Positions 28,995 to 38,331 of a DNA stretch of 64,000 bases are shown here, piece by piece. The DNA is from Anaeramoeba ignava BMAN (taxonomy: Eukaryota > Protista > Anaeramoebae). The position numbers were made by a program, and so were the translations under genes. The notes beneath the pieces are model-generated. The model made no database searches. It was not told the origin of the DNA and saw only the letters and a program-made list of their open reading frames with translations. The DNA lies in NCBI GenBank assembly GCA_028826165.1, contig JAPDFW010000074.1, positions 248,001 to 312,000 on the forward strand, given 5' to 3'. The stretch's first letter is position 1. Every line of letters starts with the position of its first letter.

Positions 28995-31724
28995 ATGAAA
29001 TTAATTCTTTTCTTTTCTTTTTCCTTTTTCTTAATTATTAATATTTTCTTAATTAAATCAAATCAAAATCAAAATCAAAATCAACAAAATTCAATTTCCA
29101 CAATAATTCAAGAACTAGAAACAACAAGATTATTAACAGAAACAACAAGATATTATTCTACTCCAGATGAAGCTTGGATTTGGAATTTATTAGATCAATT
29201 TTCAGGTTCAGGATATTTTGGGCATTCTGTTTCAATTTATGGAGATGTTACTGTTATTGGAACTGGTAATGCAAATCAATCATATATTTACAGATATAAT
29301 GGATCAATTTGGAATCAAGAACAAATTTTGAGTGAACCTTCAGCTTCATATTTTGGATCTTCTGTTTCAATTTATGAAGATGTTATTGTTATTGGAGCTC
29401 CTGGTGCAAATCAATCATATATTTACAGATATAATGGAACAATTTGGAATCAAGAACAAATTTTGAGTGAACCTTCAGCTTCATATTTTGGATCTCCTGT
29501 TTCAATTTATGAAGATGTTATTGTTATCGGAGCTCCTGATGCAAGAAAAGCATTTATTTACAGATATAATGGAACAAATTGGAATCAAGAAGAAAATTTG
29601 AGTGAACCTTCATATTCAAATTTTGGATTTTCTGTTTCAATTTATGAAGATGTTATTGTTATTGGAACTTATGGTGCAAATCAAGTATTTATTTACAGAT
29701 ATAATGGATCAATTTGGAATGAAGAACAAGTTTTGGATGAACCTTTAATTTCAAATTTTGGATTTTCTGTTTCAGTTTATGAAGATGTTATTGTTATTGG
29801 AACTTATGGTGCAAATCAAGCATTTATTTACAGATATAATGAATCAATTTGGAATGAAGAACAAATTTTGAGTGAACCTTCATATTCATATTTTGGATGG
29901 TCTGTTTCAATTTATGAAGATGTTATTGTTATTGGAGCTCCTAATGCAAATAAAGCATTTATTTACAGATATAATGAATCAATTTGGAATCAAGAAAAAT
30001 TTTTGAGTGAATCAGCTACAGATTTTGGGAATTCTGTTTCAATTTATGAGAATTTTACTGTTATTGGAGCTTATGTTGCAAATCAAGCATTTGTTTATGA
30101 AGGTAGTTTCATTCCCCAAGTTAATATTCTTAATTGTTCATCTTTGTTTTCATCATTTGATTGTTATTGGGATAAAATTGAATTTCCTTCAACTTTGAAA
30201 TATCAAATTAATTATGGATATGATTGGATTGATATTGATTATCCAATTCTTGAAGATGGAAATGTTTATTATCAACAATTTAATTCTTCAATTTATGATA
30301 ATATTACTGGAAATGAATATTATTCAATTCAAATCAAAGCTTGTGATATATCAACAATGAAATGTGGTGAATCTTCTTCTTTCATTAATTTAACAACAAA
30401 AATTGATTCTGTAAAAGATTTTCAATTATCAAATCCTTCAAATAATTCAATTAATGTTACTTGGAATTATCCAAATGTTCAGATCAATGAAGGAATTGCT
30501 CATCTTAATCATTACAATCTTTCTTATATCATTCAATCTCAACCTGATTTAATATCTTTCATTTCAGTTGATAATTCTTCACTTGATTATCTTTTGAATA
30601 ATTTAGAATGTGAAAATGATTATAATATTTCAATTTGTGGATGTAGAACACAAGAATGTGAAGGAGATGATAAAGGAGAAATTGTTGAATCATCAATTTC
30701 ATTATTATTTGGTGAAGTTACAAATTTAACATGTTCAATTTCAAATTCAATAGATATTAATTGTAATTGGAATCAACCAATTAATTGTTCAATTCCATTT
30801 TATTATAATTTAACTTATCAATCAATTTATCAAAATGATTCTGGAAATTATCAACCAACTTCATCAAATCAACAATTTACAGTTCAAATTCCAAATCAAG
30901 AATATCAAATCAATATATCAGCATGTAATTCAAATGGAAAATGTGGATATATTTCATCAATTTCAATTAAAACTGATAATTTAACATCTCCAATAATTTA
31001 TGAAACAATTTCTAAAATTGAAGAAATTGAATTTAATTTCACAAAATTAATAAATGCAAATAATTATTCAATTTCACTTGATAATGGAACAAATTGGGAA
31101 AAATTCACATCTCTTGATTTAAGTGGAAATGAAATAATTGGAATAATAAGTGGAATATCAGGAAATATTGAATATAATATTTCAATTCGAGGATGTGTTG
31201 ATTTAAATTGTGAAACTCCATATTTAGGATTACCTAGTTCAATTATTTCAACAAGAGCTAAATTAGGAAATATTACTTCATTAAATTGTTATTCATTAAT
31301 TAATGGATTTGAATGTAATTGGAATTCATTAATTTTATCAAGTGGATTAAAAGCATATTCATTTACTTATAATTCAACTTCAATTTGTTTATCAAATCTA
31401 ACAACAATTTATTCAGTTTCAGGATTAAATGAAGGAGAATATTATGAAATTTCAATTTATTCATCAGCTGATTTAAATTGTTCATTTAATCAATATTCAG
31501 GAATTAATTCAACAACATCAATTACAATATCAACAATAAATGAATCTAATAATAATTCAAACACAGCAGCAATAACTTTAGGTATAATTATTCCTATTAT
31601 TGTTATTTCAATAATTATTATTGGAATTATTTTCTATAAGAAGAAAAGAAGAAAACAAATTATCAAAGAAATTATCAAAGAAAACAAAGAAGAACAAGAA
31701 CTTCAAGATAATTTGGATATTTAA
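28995..31724 (+). CDS. Receptor copy B: signal peptide + 7 FG-GAP-like blades + FN3-like stalk + TM + short tail (909 aa)
   Basis: Intact ORF with seven FGxSVSIYxDVIVIG..A..A(F/Y)IYRYN...W repeats, FN3-like W/Y pattern and TM ITLGIIIPIIVISIIIIGIIF. Confidence 0.9.
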   Translation: MKLILFFSFSFFLIINIFLIKSNQNQNQNQQNSISTIIQELETTRLLTETTRYYSTPDEAWIWNLLDQFSGSGYFGHSVSIYGDVTVIGTGNANQSYIYRYNGSIWNQEQILSEPSASYFGSSVSIYEDVIVIGAPGANQSYIYRYNGTIWNQEQILSEPSASYFGSPVSIYEDVIVIGAPDARKAFIYRYNGTNWNQEENLSEPSYSNFGFSVSIYEDVIVIGTYGANQVFIYRYNGSIWNEEQVLDEPLISNFGFSVSVYEDVIVIGTYGANQAFIYRYNESIWNEEQILSEPSYSYFGWSVSIYEDVIVIGAPNANKAFIYRYNESIWNQEKFLSESATDFGNSVSIYENFTVIGAYVANQAFVYEGSFIPQVNILNCSSLFSSFDCYWDKIEFPSTLKYQINYGYDWIDIDYPILEDGNVYYQQFNSSIYDNITGNEYYSIQIKACDISTMKCGESSSFINLTTKIDSVKDFQLSNPSNNSINVTWNYPNVQINEGIAHLNHYNLSYIIQSQPDLISFISVDNSSLDYLLNNLECENDYNISICGCRTQECEGDDKGEIVESSISLLFGEVTNLTCSISNSIDINCNWNQPINCSIPFYYNLTYQSIYQNDSGNYQPTSSNQQFTVQIPNQEYQINISACNSNGKCGYISSISIKTDNLTSPIIYETISKIEEIEFNFTKLINANNYSISLDNGTNWEKFTSLDLSGNEIIGIISGISGNIEYNISIRGCVDLNCETPYLGLPSSIISTRAKLGNITSLNCYSLINGFECNWNSLILSSGLKAYSFTYNSTSICLSNLTTIYSVSGLNEGEYYEISIYSSADLNCSFNQYSGINSTTSITISTINESNNNSNTAAITLGIIIPIIVISIIIIGIIFYKKKRRKQIIKEIIKENKEEQELQDNLDI

Positions 31725-32196: not shown

Positions 32197-35100
32197 ATGC
32201 TTGAATTTTTACAATTTTTACAAAAACATTAAATTAATATTTTGGACAAAATTAAATTTAAACAATATTTTTAAATTTAATTTATAAATTAAATATTAAA
32301 TAAATGTATTTTATTTTTTTATTTGAAGGAAAGATTTAAAAATAAAATATTTAATTCTGGAAACTAAAATGGTCATTTGAAAACAATTTAGAATTAGTTT
32401 TTCTTTAAATTAATTTATAAAGAATGTATGTTCTTTATTTGAAAAAGAAAAGTTCTTTTTAAAGAAAATTAAATTAAAAATTTTTCATTTTTATTGAATT
32501 TATTAAAAATAAAAAATTTTTACAATTTTAAAAAATTAACTAATGTTTGGATTAATGCTCAATTTTTGCTAATTTAAATATTCCTTTAAATGATTCTTTT
32601 CAAGAAAAGTTGAAGGAAGAGATTCTATTCTTTATCATCTTTCTGATAAAGGAAAATTAAAATGGTCATTTTAAAAAATTTAAATTCAGTTTTTATTTGT
32701 GTTTAAATCAAAATTAAAAATAAAATTTCAAATTAAAATTAAAATTAAAATTAAAATTAAAATTCATTTATAAAAGAATTAAAATTAAAATTAAAATTCA
32801 TTTATAAAATTAAAATTAAAATTAATATTTAAAATTCATTTATTCTTTTCAGAAAATTTAAATTTAAATTCATTTATAAAGGAAAAGTAAAATTCATTTA
32901 TAAAATAAAAATTAAAATTAAAATTCATTTATAAAATTAAAATTAAAATTAATATTAAAATAAAATTTAAATTCATTTATAAAATAAAAATTAAAATTAA
33001 AATTTAAATCAAAATTAAAATTAAAATTAAAATTAAAATTAAAATTAAAATTAAAAATTAAAATTCATTTATAAAATTAAAATCAAAATTAAAATTAAAA
33101 TAAAAATTAAAATTAAAATTAAAAATTAAAATCAAAATTAAAATTAAAATTAAAATCAAAATCAAAATTAAAATTCATTTAAAATTAAAATTAAAATTAA
33201 AATATACAATTAAAATTAAATTAAAAAATTAAAATTAAATTAAAATTAAAATTAAAATTAAAATCAAAATTAAAATTAAAATTAAAATTAAAATTAAAAT
33301 TAAAATTAAAATCAAAATTAAAATTAAAATCAAAATTAAAATTAAAATTAAAATTAAAATTCATTTATAAAATTAAAATTCAAATTAAAATTAATATTAA
33401 AATTCTTTTATAAAATTCTTTTATAAATTTCTTTTATAAAATTAAAAGAAAAATAATACGGAAATTACACATTGGCAAGATACAAAAAAAGGACAACAAA
33501 TTACAAAAGAAAGAGGAATAAAAGATAAAAAAAACAAAACAAAACAAAACCAAGGAAATAAAACACAAGTAAAAAAAGGTGACGATGAAGAAGAAAGTGA
33601 TAAAAAAAAAAGGCAAAACGAAGAAAATAAAGACGAAAATCCAGATCCAGAAATGGAAGAATTAGAAAAAAAATTTGGAAGAAGAAATCGAGGAAAATCA
33701 ACAAAACCAAATCAAAAATTCCAAAAAAAAAAGAATCAAAACAAAAAAAAACAAAATTCTAAAGAGAATTCTAGAGAAAATAGTTCGAATAACTTGAAAT
33801 TGGATGAAAAACAAAAATCAACTGATATCGATGACAAGGATTTAGATAAATTATTAAAAAAATTTATGGGAACAGGAGAATCTGATCTGTCTTTTCATCT
33901 TAGTTCAGATGATGAAGAAATTGATGAAAATGAAATTGAGGAAAAAATCGAAAAATTTCGAAAAGAAAAGGAAGAAAAAATTAAAGAAGAAGAAAAAGGC
34001 AAAAAAAAAGGAGGAGTTTTTGGGTTTTTTAAAAGTCTAGCGAGTGATTCAGAATTAACAAGAAAGGATCTGGTTCCGGTTGTTGATAAATTTCGTCTTC
34101 ATTTGATTACTAAAAATGTACCTTCAGAAATTGCACAAAAAATTTGTGAATCTATTATTGTTAATCTTGAAGGAAAAAAAATTGGGAAATTTACAAGAAC
34201 TGTTGCAGTTGTTAAGGAAGCGATTGAAGATTCCATTATGAAAATATTAACACCCAAGAAAGATATTAATATTCTAAAAAATATTGAGGAATCAAAAACA
34301 AAAGGGGTGCCTTATACAATTGTATTTTGTGGAGTGAATGGAGTTGGGAAAGTAAAAATATTCAAATATAAAAAAAATATTCAAATATAAAAAAATATTC
34401 AAATAATTTATATAAAAAAATATTTAAATATTTATAAAAGTGTCTTGCAAAAAATACTCCGATTCTACTTTATAACGGTTCAATCCAAAACGTTCAAGAT
34501 ATCAAACAAGGATCTCTAATAATGGGTGATGATTCAACTCCAAGAAAAGTCATTTCAACTACAAAAGGAAAAAGTGAAATGTTTAAAATCACTCATTCAG
34601 ATGGAAGGTTTTATATTGTTAACAACCAACACATTTTAACTCTTCAAAACAAACAAGGAAAAACCATTGATATTTCAATCCAAGATTATTTGAAAAAATC
34701 AACATTTTGGAAACAGCAATATTTCGGGTTTACAGTTCCTGTTGATTTTCAAAAACAACAAATTCAAATCAATCCTTATTCGTTTGCTTTATGGATTGCT
34801 GGCAAAAAAACACTGAATAAGGATTTTTTAAACAGGAACAAATTTATTCCAAACGAACTCAAATTCAACACAAGAAAAATTAGAATGGAATTTTTGTCTG
34901 GATTAATTGATTCAATTGGAAAAAGAGAAGTTATAAAAGATGGAGAAAAAGAAAAAGCATATTATGAATTGGATTTTGGTTCTGAAAATAAAACACTCAG
35001 AAATGATGTTGAATTCATTTGCAATTCTTTAGGATTAAAAACGCAACGTGAAGAAACAGAGAATTTAATAATTTTGGAGGAAGAAATGGAAAAAATTGAG

Positions 35101-35850
35101 AAAGCAGGAAAATCAAGAAATTGCTGTTCAAATGAAACAGACAAAAATCAAGGAGTTCATCTTTATAATTTTGCAGTTGAATCAATCGGAGAAGATGAAT
35201 ATTTTGGATTTACACTTGATGGAAATGGAAGGTTTATTTTAGGGAATTTTATCGTTACACACAACAGCACATCACTTGCCAAAATTGCGTTTTGGTTGCA
35301 ACAGAAGAAATACAGCATCATCATTGCGGCTGGAGATACTTTCCGCTCTGGAGCTGTTGAGCAGCTTCGGGTTCATGCAAAATGCTTGAATATCCCTTTG
35401 TTCGAAAGAGGATACAGGAAAGACCCAGTCAATGTTGCTGCTGCTGCAATTCGAAAAGCGCAAAGCGAGAATATTGATGTTGTTCTTGTTGACACAACTG
35501 GAAGAATGCAAGACAACGAAACGCAGATGCGCGCGTTAGTTCGTCTTGTTGAGGTCAACAATCCTGACTTACTTTTGTTTGTTGGAGAGGCTTTAGTTGG
35601 GAATGATGGTGTTGATCAATTGGTTCAATTCAATCGTTGTTTGGCTGATTATTCAAATCTTCCTAATCCTAGACTTATTGATGGTATTCTTTTGACTAAG
35701 TTTGATACTATTGATGATAAAGTTGGTGCTGCTTTATCAATGGTTTATACTTCGGGTCAACCTATTGTTTTTGTTGGAGTTGGACAAACATATCCTGATT
35801 TGAAGAAAATGGATGCAAAAGTTGTTTGCAAACTTTTGACCAAGATTTAA
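32197..35850 (+). CDS. SRPRA: Signal recognition particle receptor alpha subunit (SRP GTPase) containing an intein; 5' part garbled; intron 34352-34440
   Basis: NG-domain motifs [16 protein letters not shown]|[50 protein letters not shown] and GVGQTYPDL. Longin-like fragments MLEF(F)TIFTK at 32197 and [12 protein letters not shown] near 32370 are frameshifted. Confidence 0.85.
34441..35265 (+). mobile_element. Intein (275 aa) with degenerate LAGLIDADG endonuclease remnant, inserted in the SRalpha P-loop (GVGK/S)
   Basis: Block [14 protein letters not shown], block [10 protein letters not shown], blocks [25 protein letters not shown] followed by Ser+1. Removing it restores [15 protein letters not shown]. 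Confidence 0.95.
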
Positions 35851-35968: not shown

Positions 35969-38331
35969 TTAGAAATTATCACATAAAAAATGAATCCTTT
36001 TTGAACCATATTCTTCATATTCATTCCTTTTCAAAGAACGTTTCAAAAATTCTTCTCCATTTGTAAATTTTGAACCTCCAATCCAAGAAAGAATATCATT
36101 GTTTGTTTGAGAACTAATCAAGATATTTTGGTTTTGTGGGAAATAATAACCCAAATCTCTCTTCAATCTTTCTTCAAAACCTGGAAACATTGTCGATCCA
36201 CCTGAAAGAATAATATTCAATGATAAAATATTTTGGATTTTTGGTTCAAATAATTCCACAATTTCATAAATTGTTTCTTGAATTCCTTTTTGCTCAACAA
36301 ACGATAAATTTGGTTGAAAAAGTACTTCTGGTGTTGAAAATCTTTCTGAATTAAGAGTTATAATTTCTTCTCCAATTTTGAAATTTTTTTCACATCTCGA
36401 TGATTCTCTTGAGATCATAAGTTCCTCTTCATAATCTAAAGCAACATAACAAAGTTCCTCTTTGATTTGCTTAACAATTTCAAATTCAGATGTTGATGAG
36501 AAATAATGACCTGCTTGTTTAAGTTGTTTCACTAAATACTGAGTAAGACTTTTTCCTCCAAATTGAAAAAAATCTAATTTATAATTCGTTGAAAATTTTC
36601 CTTCATAAACTGGCAATATTTGAGTCAATCCATCCCCAATATCAACAACAAGTCCTGTTCTTCTATTCAATGCAAGAAGAGTTAATAAAGGCTGGATTTC
36701 AAATGCGATTGAAGGAAATGAAAAAGTTTCAAGGAATAGTTCAACTAATTTCTCTCTTTCTGGTTTTGATGCAAACATTGGCTCAGCAATGAGAACTGGT
36801 TCGTTTGCTGATTCCATTTTAAGTTCAGAGAAAAGAAGATGGTGATAAATTTTCTCAAGCTGATCCCAGTTTTTTACTCTTCCATTTTCGATTGGATACT
36901 CGATTCTTAATTCTTTTTTTGAAATTGCATCATTTCCAATATAATTTATTTTTTTCCGATTTGTTCCAATTAGATTCGGTAGTTTGATTTTGGGCGACAT
37001 TTCTCCTGAAAATCCTGCTTTAATTGAATTTGAACCTTGATCAATCACAATAGCATTTCCGTTTCCCATTTCCTTAATCCAAAAATTAAATTTAAATTTC
37101 AATTAATTTAAAATAAAAATAAAACCATTTCCATTTAACATTATTTTACAGATTGAGAAGGAATCTCTTTTTCAAATTGAATATAGAAATCATTTTCCAT
37201 TTCTGAAGTTTTCGAATAATCTTGAAATGTTGGAATTTCGCCATTTTCGTTGTAATCATCCATGGTATAAAACTTTGTAAACTCTTTCGCAATTTTTGAG
37301 CTTCCAATCCAATTCAAAAAATTCCGATTTTCCAAACTAACAATATTCACTTGATTTTGAGTTGATAATTCAAGCTCTTTTTTCAATCTTTCAGGAAAGC
37401 CTTGAAACAGCGTTGATCCACCAGATAAAATGATGTTCTGAAATAGCAATTGGTGATATTGAGGATCGCATTTTAAAATACTATCAGAAACTAGTTTGTG
37501 AATTGGATGATAATTCCAATCTTGCATTTTCGGTTGAAATAACAATTCGGGACAAATAAATCGAGATTGGGAAAGCGAAACAGTTTGGTAATCAGGAAGT
37601 TCATAAGATTTACTCAAATTTTCTTTTCGTGATTTTTCCATTTCCTTATCAAAATCCAAAGCAACATAGCATAATTTTTCTTTGATATCTTGCACTAATC
37701 CAATATCAGAGCTTTCATTGAGTATCGGCAAATTGACTGCCTCTGAATACATTAATTTCCTCAAAAATAAATTTAATTCATAGCCTGCAATATTTTGTTT
37801 TTGCACATTTTCAATAATTCCATTTCCATTAATAAAAGGCTCCACAATAGAAATACCGTCTCCAATATGAACAACAATTGCTGTTGAATTTCTATCGATT
37901 GAAGTTAGAATTGATTGGCAAAAATCATTCAAATGCAACGCAGGCACATTAAATGTTTCAAAAAGAATTTGACCTATTTTTTGTGATTGAATTTTTGGAT
38001 TTCGTGCGAATTCATTCACAAAAACAGGATATTTTTCAGGTTCAACACGAAGTTCATTATAATAAGCGTGATAAATTAATTTTTCATAATCATCCCAATT
38101 GTCAATGATCCCGTTTTTAATTACATAACGAAAACTAAGAAAACTTCGTTTGGATTTTATTTCATCTCCAACATATGAATCTTTATTATTAGCTCCAATC
38201 ATAACAAATTTATATTTGGGTCTCCCAACTATACTTGGAAAAACAGAACGAGGAGCGTTATCGCCAGCAAATCCTGCTTTGATATTATATGAACCGTGAT
38301 TCAGGCAAACAACTTGATTATTTTTTTCCAT
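35969..38331 (-). CDS. Actin-related protein(s): two divergent actin folds, probably one 761-aa tandem di-actin gene (exon 1 38331-37150, intron 37149-37073, exon 2 37072-35969)
   Basis: Both ORFs carry actin signatures (KAGFAGDNAPRSVFPSIVGRPK, IGDG, IKEKLCYVALDF, IILSGGST, WIG(G/S)S). A phase-0 GTAAAA...TAAG intron removes the stop and joins them in frame. Confidence 0.75.

Follow-up and report, generated by a model that had tools for sequence, protein, structure and literature searches.

Can a spliceosomal intron and an intein occupy the same codon boundary of a working essential gene, and how would the two have come to meet there? This question is raised by a 64,000-nt stretch of the genome of Anaeramoeba ignava BMAN (contig JAPDFW010000074.1, positions 248,001 to 312,000 of the forward strand), referred to below as the window and used as the frame for coordinates. 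The window contains the gene for SRalpha, the alpha subunit of the signal recognition particle (SRP) receptor. The Walker A motif (P-loop) of its GTPase domain is interrupted between lysine and serine, first by an 89-nt intron and then, from the very next codon, by a 275-residue intein. The original prediction made from this DNA had suggested that the intron may have arisen during break repair at homing.

The origin of new spliceosomal introns is a long-standing question. Break repair is a leading model, and natural cases in which the break site is known are scarce. In SRalpha the likely break site is known to the base, as the insertion point of the intein in Walker A, and introns pile up both at that point and beside inteins. 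The explanation that we favor, with a probability of roughly 0.7, is that a single-copy SRalpha gene is expressed through two successive splicing steps, that its intein hopped in from another P-loop, that the shared boundary did not arise by chance and that intron and intein boundary are most likely linked by the repair of DNA breaks.

An intron and an intein meet at one codon boundary of SRalpha

The codons of GVNGVGK (34331-34351) are the last of an upstream SRalpha exon (33449..34351; this and all other SRalpha features are on the plus strand). This exon encodes a charged linker, the SRP54_N helical bundle (Pfam PF02881) and the first half of Walker A, ending in ...FCGVNGVGK. It forms the N-extein, corresponds to residues 2-302 of the protein deposited at NCBI and is 54% identical to SRalpha of Anaeramoeba flamelloides, as far as the GVNGTGK of that protein. 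Directly behind the lysine codon lies a phase-0 GT-AG intron (34352..34440), whose GT (34352-34353) and AG (34439-34440) are the sole GT and the sole AG within its 89 nt. Its 5' site, GTAAAA, resembles those of other A. ignava introns, its A+T content is 94.4% as against 60-71% in the adjoining coding parts and a published 91.86% for A. ignava introns (PMC11550330), and it carries stops in all three frames. If it were retained, read-through would terminate at 34388-34390, as confirmed by the open reading frame (ORF) 33653..34390. Its removal restores the frame and joins GVNGVGK to Cys1 of the intein, TGT at 34441.

The intein (34441..35265) is a class-1 intein of the PI-SceI/VMA type with a Hint domain and a degenerate LAGLIDADG endonuclease domain, and it runs from Cys1 to a His-Asn pair ending at 35265. 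The C-extein (35266..35850) opens with Ser+1 (AGC at 35266), completes Walker A as STSLAK and encodes an SRP54-type GTPase domain (PF00448, E 4e-45). The open frame that starts with the TGT at 34441 comprises 469 codons, up to the stop at 35848-35850.

With both an SRP54_N and an SRP54-type GTPase domain, and with SRalpha of many eukaryotes as its top matches, the locus is identified as SRalpha; its exteins share 67-69% identity with SRalpha from other eukaryotes. Searched in six frames with the C-extein, the 42.8 Mb A. ignava assembly yielded this one SRalpha locus and, at a separate locus, the distant paralogue SRP54. For the searches the deposited NCBI protein served as the spliced product, and the pieces of the window were searched exon by exon. 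The original prediction thus holds for the architecture of the locus: it had named SRalpha as the host, which Pfam domains and best matches bear out, had rightly thought of Anaeramoeba, had placed the intein between the lysine and serine of Walker A with a phase-0 intron adjoining Cys1 and two successive splicing steps, and had given the GVNGVGK codons, the intron, Cys1, the VTHN end at 35265 and the stop of the retained intron correctly to the base.

We also considered that the intein might be skipped at the RNA level. This was rejected: no AG directly precedes the Ser+1 codon, and the nearest one, within the codon itself, would throw the following sequence out of frame.

The best database match is a 771-residue NCBI protein, 'intein-containing signal recognition particle receptor subunit alpha precursor [Anaeramoeba ignava]'. 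Its coding sequence joins the same exon junction as read here and the junction shows in the protein sequence; the depositors therefore removed exactly the 89-nt intron. The authors of the A. ignava BMAN genome, which is 80.65% A+T, mapped RNA sequencing reads of this strain (PMC11550330). The intein and the gene model are already catalogued at NCBI, and the intein is not a new one.

Splicing and endonuclease parts of the intein

Within 34441-35265, Pfam detects Hom_end_hint (PF05203, E 2.4e-19) and, at the borderline, Hom_end (PF05204, 21.4 bits against a cut-off of 21.1). Cys1 of the SRalpha intein falls on Cys1 of PI-SceI and of the 31 relatives with which it was aligned. Splicing blocks A, B, F and G are conserved among the relatives, and the SRalpha intein retains the block-B histidine (in an NNQH block), the terminal VTHN and Ser+1. 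The best solved relative is PI-SceI, which aligns at the splicing blocks of both termini and at LAGLIDADG motif 2.

The endonuclease part has fared differently from the splicing part. In motif 2, the SRalpha intein has isoleucine at the final acidic position of the PI-SceI sequence FLAGLIDSDG. Its motif 1 reads ALWIAGK; when compared by eye with LWIGDG of PI-SceI, whose catalytic residues are Asp218 and Asp326, it has glycine at the position equivalent to Asp218. With other residues in place of both LAGLIDADG catalytic aspartates, the endonuclease is probably inactive, and the suggestion that the intron may constrain the spread of the intein, made in the original prediction, becomes largely moot. 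In the family alignment, the canonical aspartates are absent from every member found in the A. ignava genome.

Since the gene is single-copy, both splicing steps must presumably work, and we infer from the preserved residues that they do. Gallot-Lavallée et al. (2023; PMC10710043) demonstrated protein splicing in three other inteins of Anaeramoeba.

Introns cluster upstream of inteins

The SRalpha arrangement could be a coincidence in an intron-rich genome, and we compared it with the other inteins of the same family in A. ignava, ~32 after near-identical gene duplicates had been collapsed. Introns sit at the exact junction, 0 nt upstream of Cys1, in SRalpha and in one MCM gene, which reads GDPGTGK, a ~318-nt intron rich in (AAAATC)n, then Cys1 (L003 / L087, G000:C71:951732-952897, minus strand). 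Further introns lie 5 nt upstream of Cys1 in a RecQ-like helicase and another MCM, 20 nt upstream in one SMC paralogue and 23 nt upstream in two more, 32 nt upstream in an XPB-like helicase and 38 nt upstream in a dynein. As background we took the distance to the first in-frame stop downstream of the same inteins, from which follow 1.08 interruptions per kb; this figure bounds the intron density from above. Against this background, an intron falls in the 40 nt upstream of 9 of the 32 inteins, where 1.4 are expected (p 5e-6), or of 7 when the SMC paralogues are collapsed (p 3e-4). Exact-junction introns, seen in 2 of ~32, are expected 0.035 times (p 6e-4). Within 40 nt downstream of the C-junction none of the ~32 inteins has an intron, the nearest lying at 57-66 nt, and the resulting split of 9 upstream to 0 downstream is itself unlikely to be chance (sign test p 0.004).

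The genome-wide test of intron enrichment at intein boundaries that had been proposed with the prediction thus finds enrichment on the upstream side and none downstream. Introns are associated non-randomly with intein N-junctions, and the boundary shared in SRalpha is not a chance event. The bias may be general beyond A. ignava: in a figure legend of Goodwin et al. (2006; PMC1635734), the alignment positions listed for RNA-polymerase inteins put an intron upstream of the intein, 3 positions away in P. nodorum, 8 in C. reinhardtii and 17 in B. dendrobatidis.

Two features that look like traces of insertion were set aside. The introns 5 nt upstream of Cys1 in the RecQ-like and MCM genes appear to be flanked by duplicated Gly-Lys codons, and these were rejected as a trace because any phase-1 intron in a glycine codon with the 5' consensus G/GTAAR reads Gly-Lys on read-through. 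Across both ends of the SRalpha intron there is a 5-nt direct repeat, AAAGT, which we do not count as evidence because it is nearly forced by the lysine codon, GT, AG and TGT in A-rich sequence.

The intein insertion point is an intron hot spot

We then scanned the whole genome for the codon pattern G-x4-G-K followed by GTAA, moving the GTAA by 1, 2, 3 and 6 bases downstream and using the reversed pattern as a control. With the GTAA directly after the lysine codon, there were 61 matches (control 30), among them ~20 P-loop genes with an intron. At +1 there were 15 matches (control 37), with no intron distinguishable from AGT serine codons. The positions +2 (6 matches, control 14) and +3 (7, control 25) gave no P-loop gene with an intron, and +6 (19, control 23) gave three. 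The remainder of the 61 position-0 matches were discarded: ~24 are protein-kinase glycine loops (GxGxxGKV, read as GKV) that have no intron, and ~17 more are noise.

The ~20 genes with an intron immediately after the lysine encode nine Rab-like GTPases, an Arf, a G-alpha, three AAA+ proteins with GPPGTGK, a DEAD-box helicase, SRP54, two other proteins and the two intein hosts; for nine of them we read the intron and the downstream exon directly. The exact insertion point of the intein is an intron hot spot in the A. ignava genome, whether or not an intein is present. Since SRP54 and ~20 P-loop genes carry an intron there, the boundary is a general hot spot and not one special to the SRalpha intein.

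Arrival of the intein at SRalpha

Used as a query, the SRalpha intein matches 83 segments of the A. ignava genome. The N-junction could be mapped for 35 copies, so that the family has at least 35 members in this genome. Nearly all of them sit between the lysine and the serine or threonine of Walker A, in unrelated NTPases: IF2/eIF5B, EF1A-like GTPases, RecQ-like helicases, MCMs, SMCs, Lon and ABC transporters, as well as dynein, an XPB-like helicase and RFC-like and AAA proteins. Outside this genome, the nearest relatives are inteins of metagenomic helicases, AAA ATPases, DnaB, thymidine kinase and a kinesin.

In a profile-free search of 1.8 billion representatives, the identical SRalpha site held an intein in Carpediemonas membranifera (KAG9391648.1) and in a metagenomic eukaryotic contig from JGI. 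Against the A. ignava SRalpha intein, these two are outscored by the IF2, RecQ, AAA and MCM inteins of the A. ignava genome. Because the SRalpha intein is closer to in-genome copies than to the SRalpha inteins of other eukaryotes, it most likely reached its site by spreading from P-loop to P-loop within the genome. For the same strain, Gallot-Lavallée et al. (2023; PMC10710043) count 103 inteins and describe homing from one P-loop to another among non-homologous proteins. In a quick, poorly resolved tree, the SRalpha intein pairs weakly with the IF2 intein.

A joint transfer, with intron and intein moving between genes as one unit, was considered and is not supported. The two exact-junction inteins, of SRalpha and MCM, do not group as sisters, and those with introns are dispersed across the same poorly resolved tree.

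The family also occupies phosphate-binding loops other than Walker A. In two genes (L019, L020; G000:C55:173787, C102:21399) the intein follows the Asp-Lys of the phosphorylation motif of P-type ATPases (DK, then TGT), and in three (L034, L038, L041; G000:C71:1075983, C1:1735875, C102:152372) it directly precedes the catalytic cysteine of CDC14-like phosphatases (VH, then C...HN, then CKAGLGRTG). Four family inteins (L020, L023, L026, L027) have a span from Cys1 to His-Asn that is not a multiple of three, which suggests an internal intron, a frameshift or decay.

Sequence of the SRalpha intron

The intron is built of repeats. Tandem Repeats Finder reports 2.8 copies of an A+T-rich 18-nt unit with 97% match, and a 15-mer of which the original prediction had counted three copies is located at 34354, 34373 and 34391. 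Matches to the intron, 73-86% identical, number more than 180 across the genome. Ten of these were inspected, and six are introns of unrelated genes; long tandem arrays make up many of the others. In an unrelated gene, an 87-nt intron (L088) is nearly end-to-end collinear with the SRalpha intron, with an alignment score ~7 standard deviations above shuffles, and another (L089) opens with GT and three copies of the same 15-mer. Judged by these likenesses, the SRalpha intron belongs to a dispersed family of repeat-built introns, which may be introner-like. In the few copies inspected, neither conserved termini nor target-site duplications were seen.

Introns with a ATATTCAAA-containing unit like that of the SRalpha intron occur at L088, L089, L091, L096 and L097 (G000:C121:97300-97750, C139:57400-57850, C138:87200-87650, C64:1324850-1325500 and C82:778350-778850).

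The repeat family opens an alternative, namely that the intein was fixed first and that the intron is one more dispersed, possibly introner-like copy whose landing had nothing to do with homing and reflects, for example, a preference for A-rich P-loop codons. Such a history would account for the near end-to-end alignment with L088, the start shared with L089 and the many genomic matches, and introns are plentiful in A. ignava, numbering over 30,000 (bioRxiv 10.64898/2026.04.11.717937). SRalpha inteins of other eukaryotes that have no intron also speak for it. We regard it as possible but doubtful, since a random landing on an exact junction is expected 0.035 times and is seen twice, since introns cluster upstream and not downstream of intein junctions and since the copies inspected lack the target-site duplications or conserved ends of a mobile element.

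SRalpha in other organisms and the paralogue SRP54

The SRalpha gene of A. flamelloides (KAJ3435171.1) is a single ORF of 2034 nt with neither intein nor intron, and SRalpha is not among the eight intein sites found in both A. ignava and A. flamelloides (PMC10710043). In Marchantia, the P-loop of SRalpha is uninterrupted and an intron lies 18 nt further downstream. An ancestral intron at the P-loop boundary was thus not found in the intein-less orthologues of A. flamelloides and Marchantia. Intron and intein both arose on the A. ignava branch, after its split from A. flamelloides. The SRalpha genes of Carpediemonas and the JGI contig are single uninterrupted ORFs and therefore have no intron at the junction.

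Exactly at the homologous boundary, SRP54 of A. ignava, which is free of inteins, carries a ~120-nt phase-0 intron that separates GLQGSGK from TTTCSK (L052, G000:C35, about 440374-440520). At least two further introns lie nearby in the SRP54 gene.

These observations bear on the idea that intron and intein arose together in break repair, which the comparison neither shows nor refutes. The orthologue intron named as its counter-evidence was not found in A. flamelloides or Marchantia; against it, an intron at the same boundary is present in intein-free SRP54 and in ~20 P-loop genes. The SRP54 intron also suggests a reverse order, in which SRalpha already had a post-lysine intron like that of SRP54 and the intein was later placed between intron and serine codon by recombination that did not require an intact exon-exon target, for instance with A+T-rich intron repeats or microhomology as the upstream anchor. 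SRP54 and ~18 further P-loop genes free of inteins show that introns occur at exactly this boundary, and the low-complexity repeats common to introns could supply homology. We consider this order improbable: SRalpha of A. flamelloides has no intron at the site, and a boundary intron removes the upstream half of any endonuclease target, which underlies both the published view of such introns as homing barriers (PMC10710043) and the mutual exclusivity of intron and intein in Bathycoccus PRP8 (PMC3749507).

Finally, a reading of the 89 nt as a disruptive insertion or assembly error, in a pseudogene or in a gene expressed from another start, is very hard to believe: splicing is indeed read here from the gene model and the sequence, and the deposited model has no SRX domain and an imperfect 5' end, but this is the sole SRalpha gene of the genome, its exteins show the conservation given above and no other defect, the insertion is bounded by the sole GT and sole AG and restores the frame exactly, the intein retains all splicing residues and the public annotation splices the intron out.

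A proposed break-repair model for the shared boundary

Taken together, these results favor the explanation given at the outset, a non-chance boundary in a single-copy gene that would be expressed in two steps. The spliceosome would take out the 89-nt A+T-rich phase-0 intron after the Walker A lysine codon. After translation, the 275-residue intein would excise itself by means of Cys1, the block-B histidine, the terminal His-Asn and Ser+1, ligating GVNGVGK to STSLAK and restoring the GTP-binding loop. As to origin, promiscuous homing endonucleases would make double-strand breaks at the P-loop boundary, and these would be repaired with the capture of dispersed A+T-rich repeat DNA, which in A. 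ignava could be spliced out as an intron. In SRalpha, the repeat would have been captured during ectopic homing, at the upstream side, where homology was lacking. Capture during break repair would explain the exact position, the upstream bias, the introns in intein-free genes and the repeat nature of the intron.

Several points weigh against this explanation. Nothing in the SRalpha intron marks it as of donor origin or as filler from a homing event, and it resembles many ordinary A. ignava introns. The lack of canonical catalytic aspartates throughout the family poses a real difficulty for models that need these enzymes to cut. The nine Rab-like post-lysine introns may descend from one old intron, and the post-lysine peak was measured in the A. 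ignava genome only. The intein tree is poorly resolved, and amino-acid composition driven by A+T content could inflate similarity among the inteins of one genome. RNA and protein splicing are predicted from the gene model, conservation and single-copy status.

A bolder version of the break-repair explanation, which we put forward only tentatively and think rather unlikely to hold, is that a P-loop-targeting family of homing endonucleases acts as a genome-wide generator of spliceosomal introns, leaving phase-0 introns at the insertion point in dozens of intein-free NTPase genes and an intron fused to the intein N-junction where ectopic homing succeeded (SRalpha and one MCM). If true, it would provide a natural and datable system for intron gain from site-specific DNA breaks. 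The break-repair model can be tested by comparing A. ignava with A. flamelloides and with A. pumila, which has almost no introns.

5' end of the gene and neighboring genes

The deposited SRalpha model lacks PF04086, the SRX domain, and begins with a lone methionine joined to 33449. A tblastn search with the SRalpha N-termini of A. flamelloides and Marchantia finds a 16-residue SRX-like coding fragment, corresponding to the N-terminal domain of SRalpha, at 32358..32405 on the plus strand, ~1 kb upstream of the deposited model, and a degenerate second copy lies near 32655-32680. Canonical splice sites were looked for around the fragment at 32358-32405 and none was found. The true 5' exons of SRalpha are probably mis-modelled.

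Between the fragment and the first modelled exon, the window holds a long (AAAAT)/(AAATT)-type microsatellite (32700-33420) with interspersed ttcatttataaaa units; were the fragment an exon, this microsatellite would fall within a large intron. The neighboring genes look ordinary: upstream (31000-31723, plus strand) lies the 3' end of a gene for a repeat-rich protein that has a membrane anchor at its C-terminus, and downstream (35969-37102, minus strand) an intron-less gene for an actin-related protein.

Comparison with known systems

Intron gain by double-strand-break repair and introner-like intron families are established models of intron origin. The SRalpha intron is like what they describe in being short and made of dispersed repeat DNA, in resembling introns of unrelated genes and in lying at an expected endonuclease break site. 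It differs in that the SRalpha sequence offers no demonstrable break, filler junction or target-site duplication, and the resemblance is one of possible mechanism and not of membership.

Among characterized inteins, the closest comparison is PI-SceI, the Saccharomyces VMA1 intein (PDB 1VDE, 1DFA, 1LWS), with which the Hom_end_hint splicing domain, the LAGLIDADG motifs and the terminal His-Asn align. PI-SceI has 454 residues as against 275 in the SRalpha intein, which has no DNA-recognition insert and has glycine and isoleucine in place of Asp218 and Asp326. The host sites also differ, being the A subunit of the V-ATPase for PI-SceI and the P-loop of a GTPase here. The inteins of Carpediemonas and the JGI contig occupy the identical GVNGVGK / C...HN / STSLAK site of the same host protein. 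They are ~25-30% identical to the A. ignava family and fall outside the 12 best matches of the A. ignava SRalpha intein, which suggests that the SRalpha site was invaded independently in A. ignava and in these lineages.

With the published Anaeramoeba inteins and the NCBI entry, our reading has the gene, the intein and the splice model in common. Gallot-Lavallée et al. (2023; PMC10710043) also report A. ignava introns at or near intein sites, including in MCM genes, and describe introns where the intein is absent, in another paralogue, interpreting these as homing barriers. The main text of that paper does not describe an intron and an intein on one codon boundary of one allele, the SRalpha/SRP54 pair, the upstream-only bias or the post-lysine peak. 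What is new here is the documented coexistence of intron and intein on one codon boundary, in SRalpha and a second time in MCM, together with the contrast between SRalpha and SRP54, intron enrichment on the upstream side only, a post-lysine peak across the genome and the membership of the intron in a repeat family.

A further parallel is the nuclear PRP8 gene of Bathycoccus (Monier et al., 2013; PMC3749507), in which a spliceosomal intron and an intein likewise use one and the same codon. There the two exclude one another across populations, whereas in SRalpha of A. ignava they coexist in one allele and would be removed one after the other. The A. ignava case shows that an intron and an intein can share a single codon boundary in a working essential gene.

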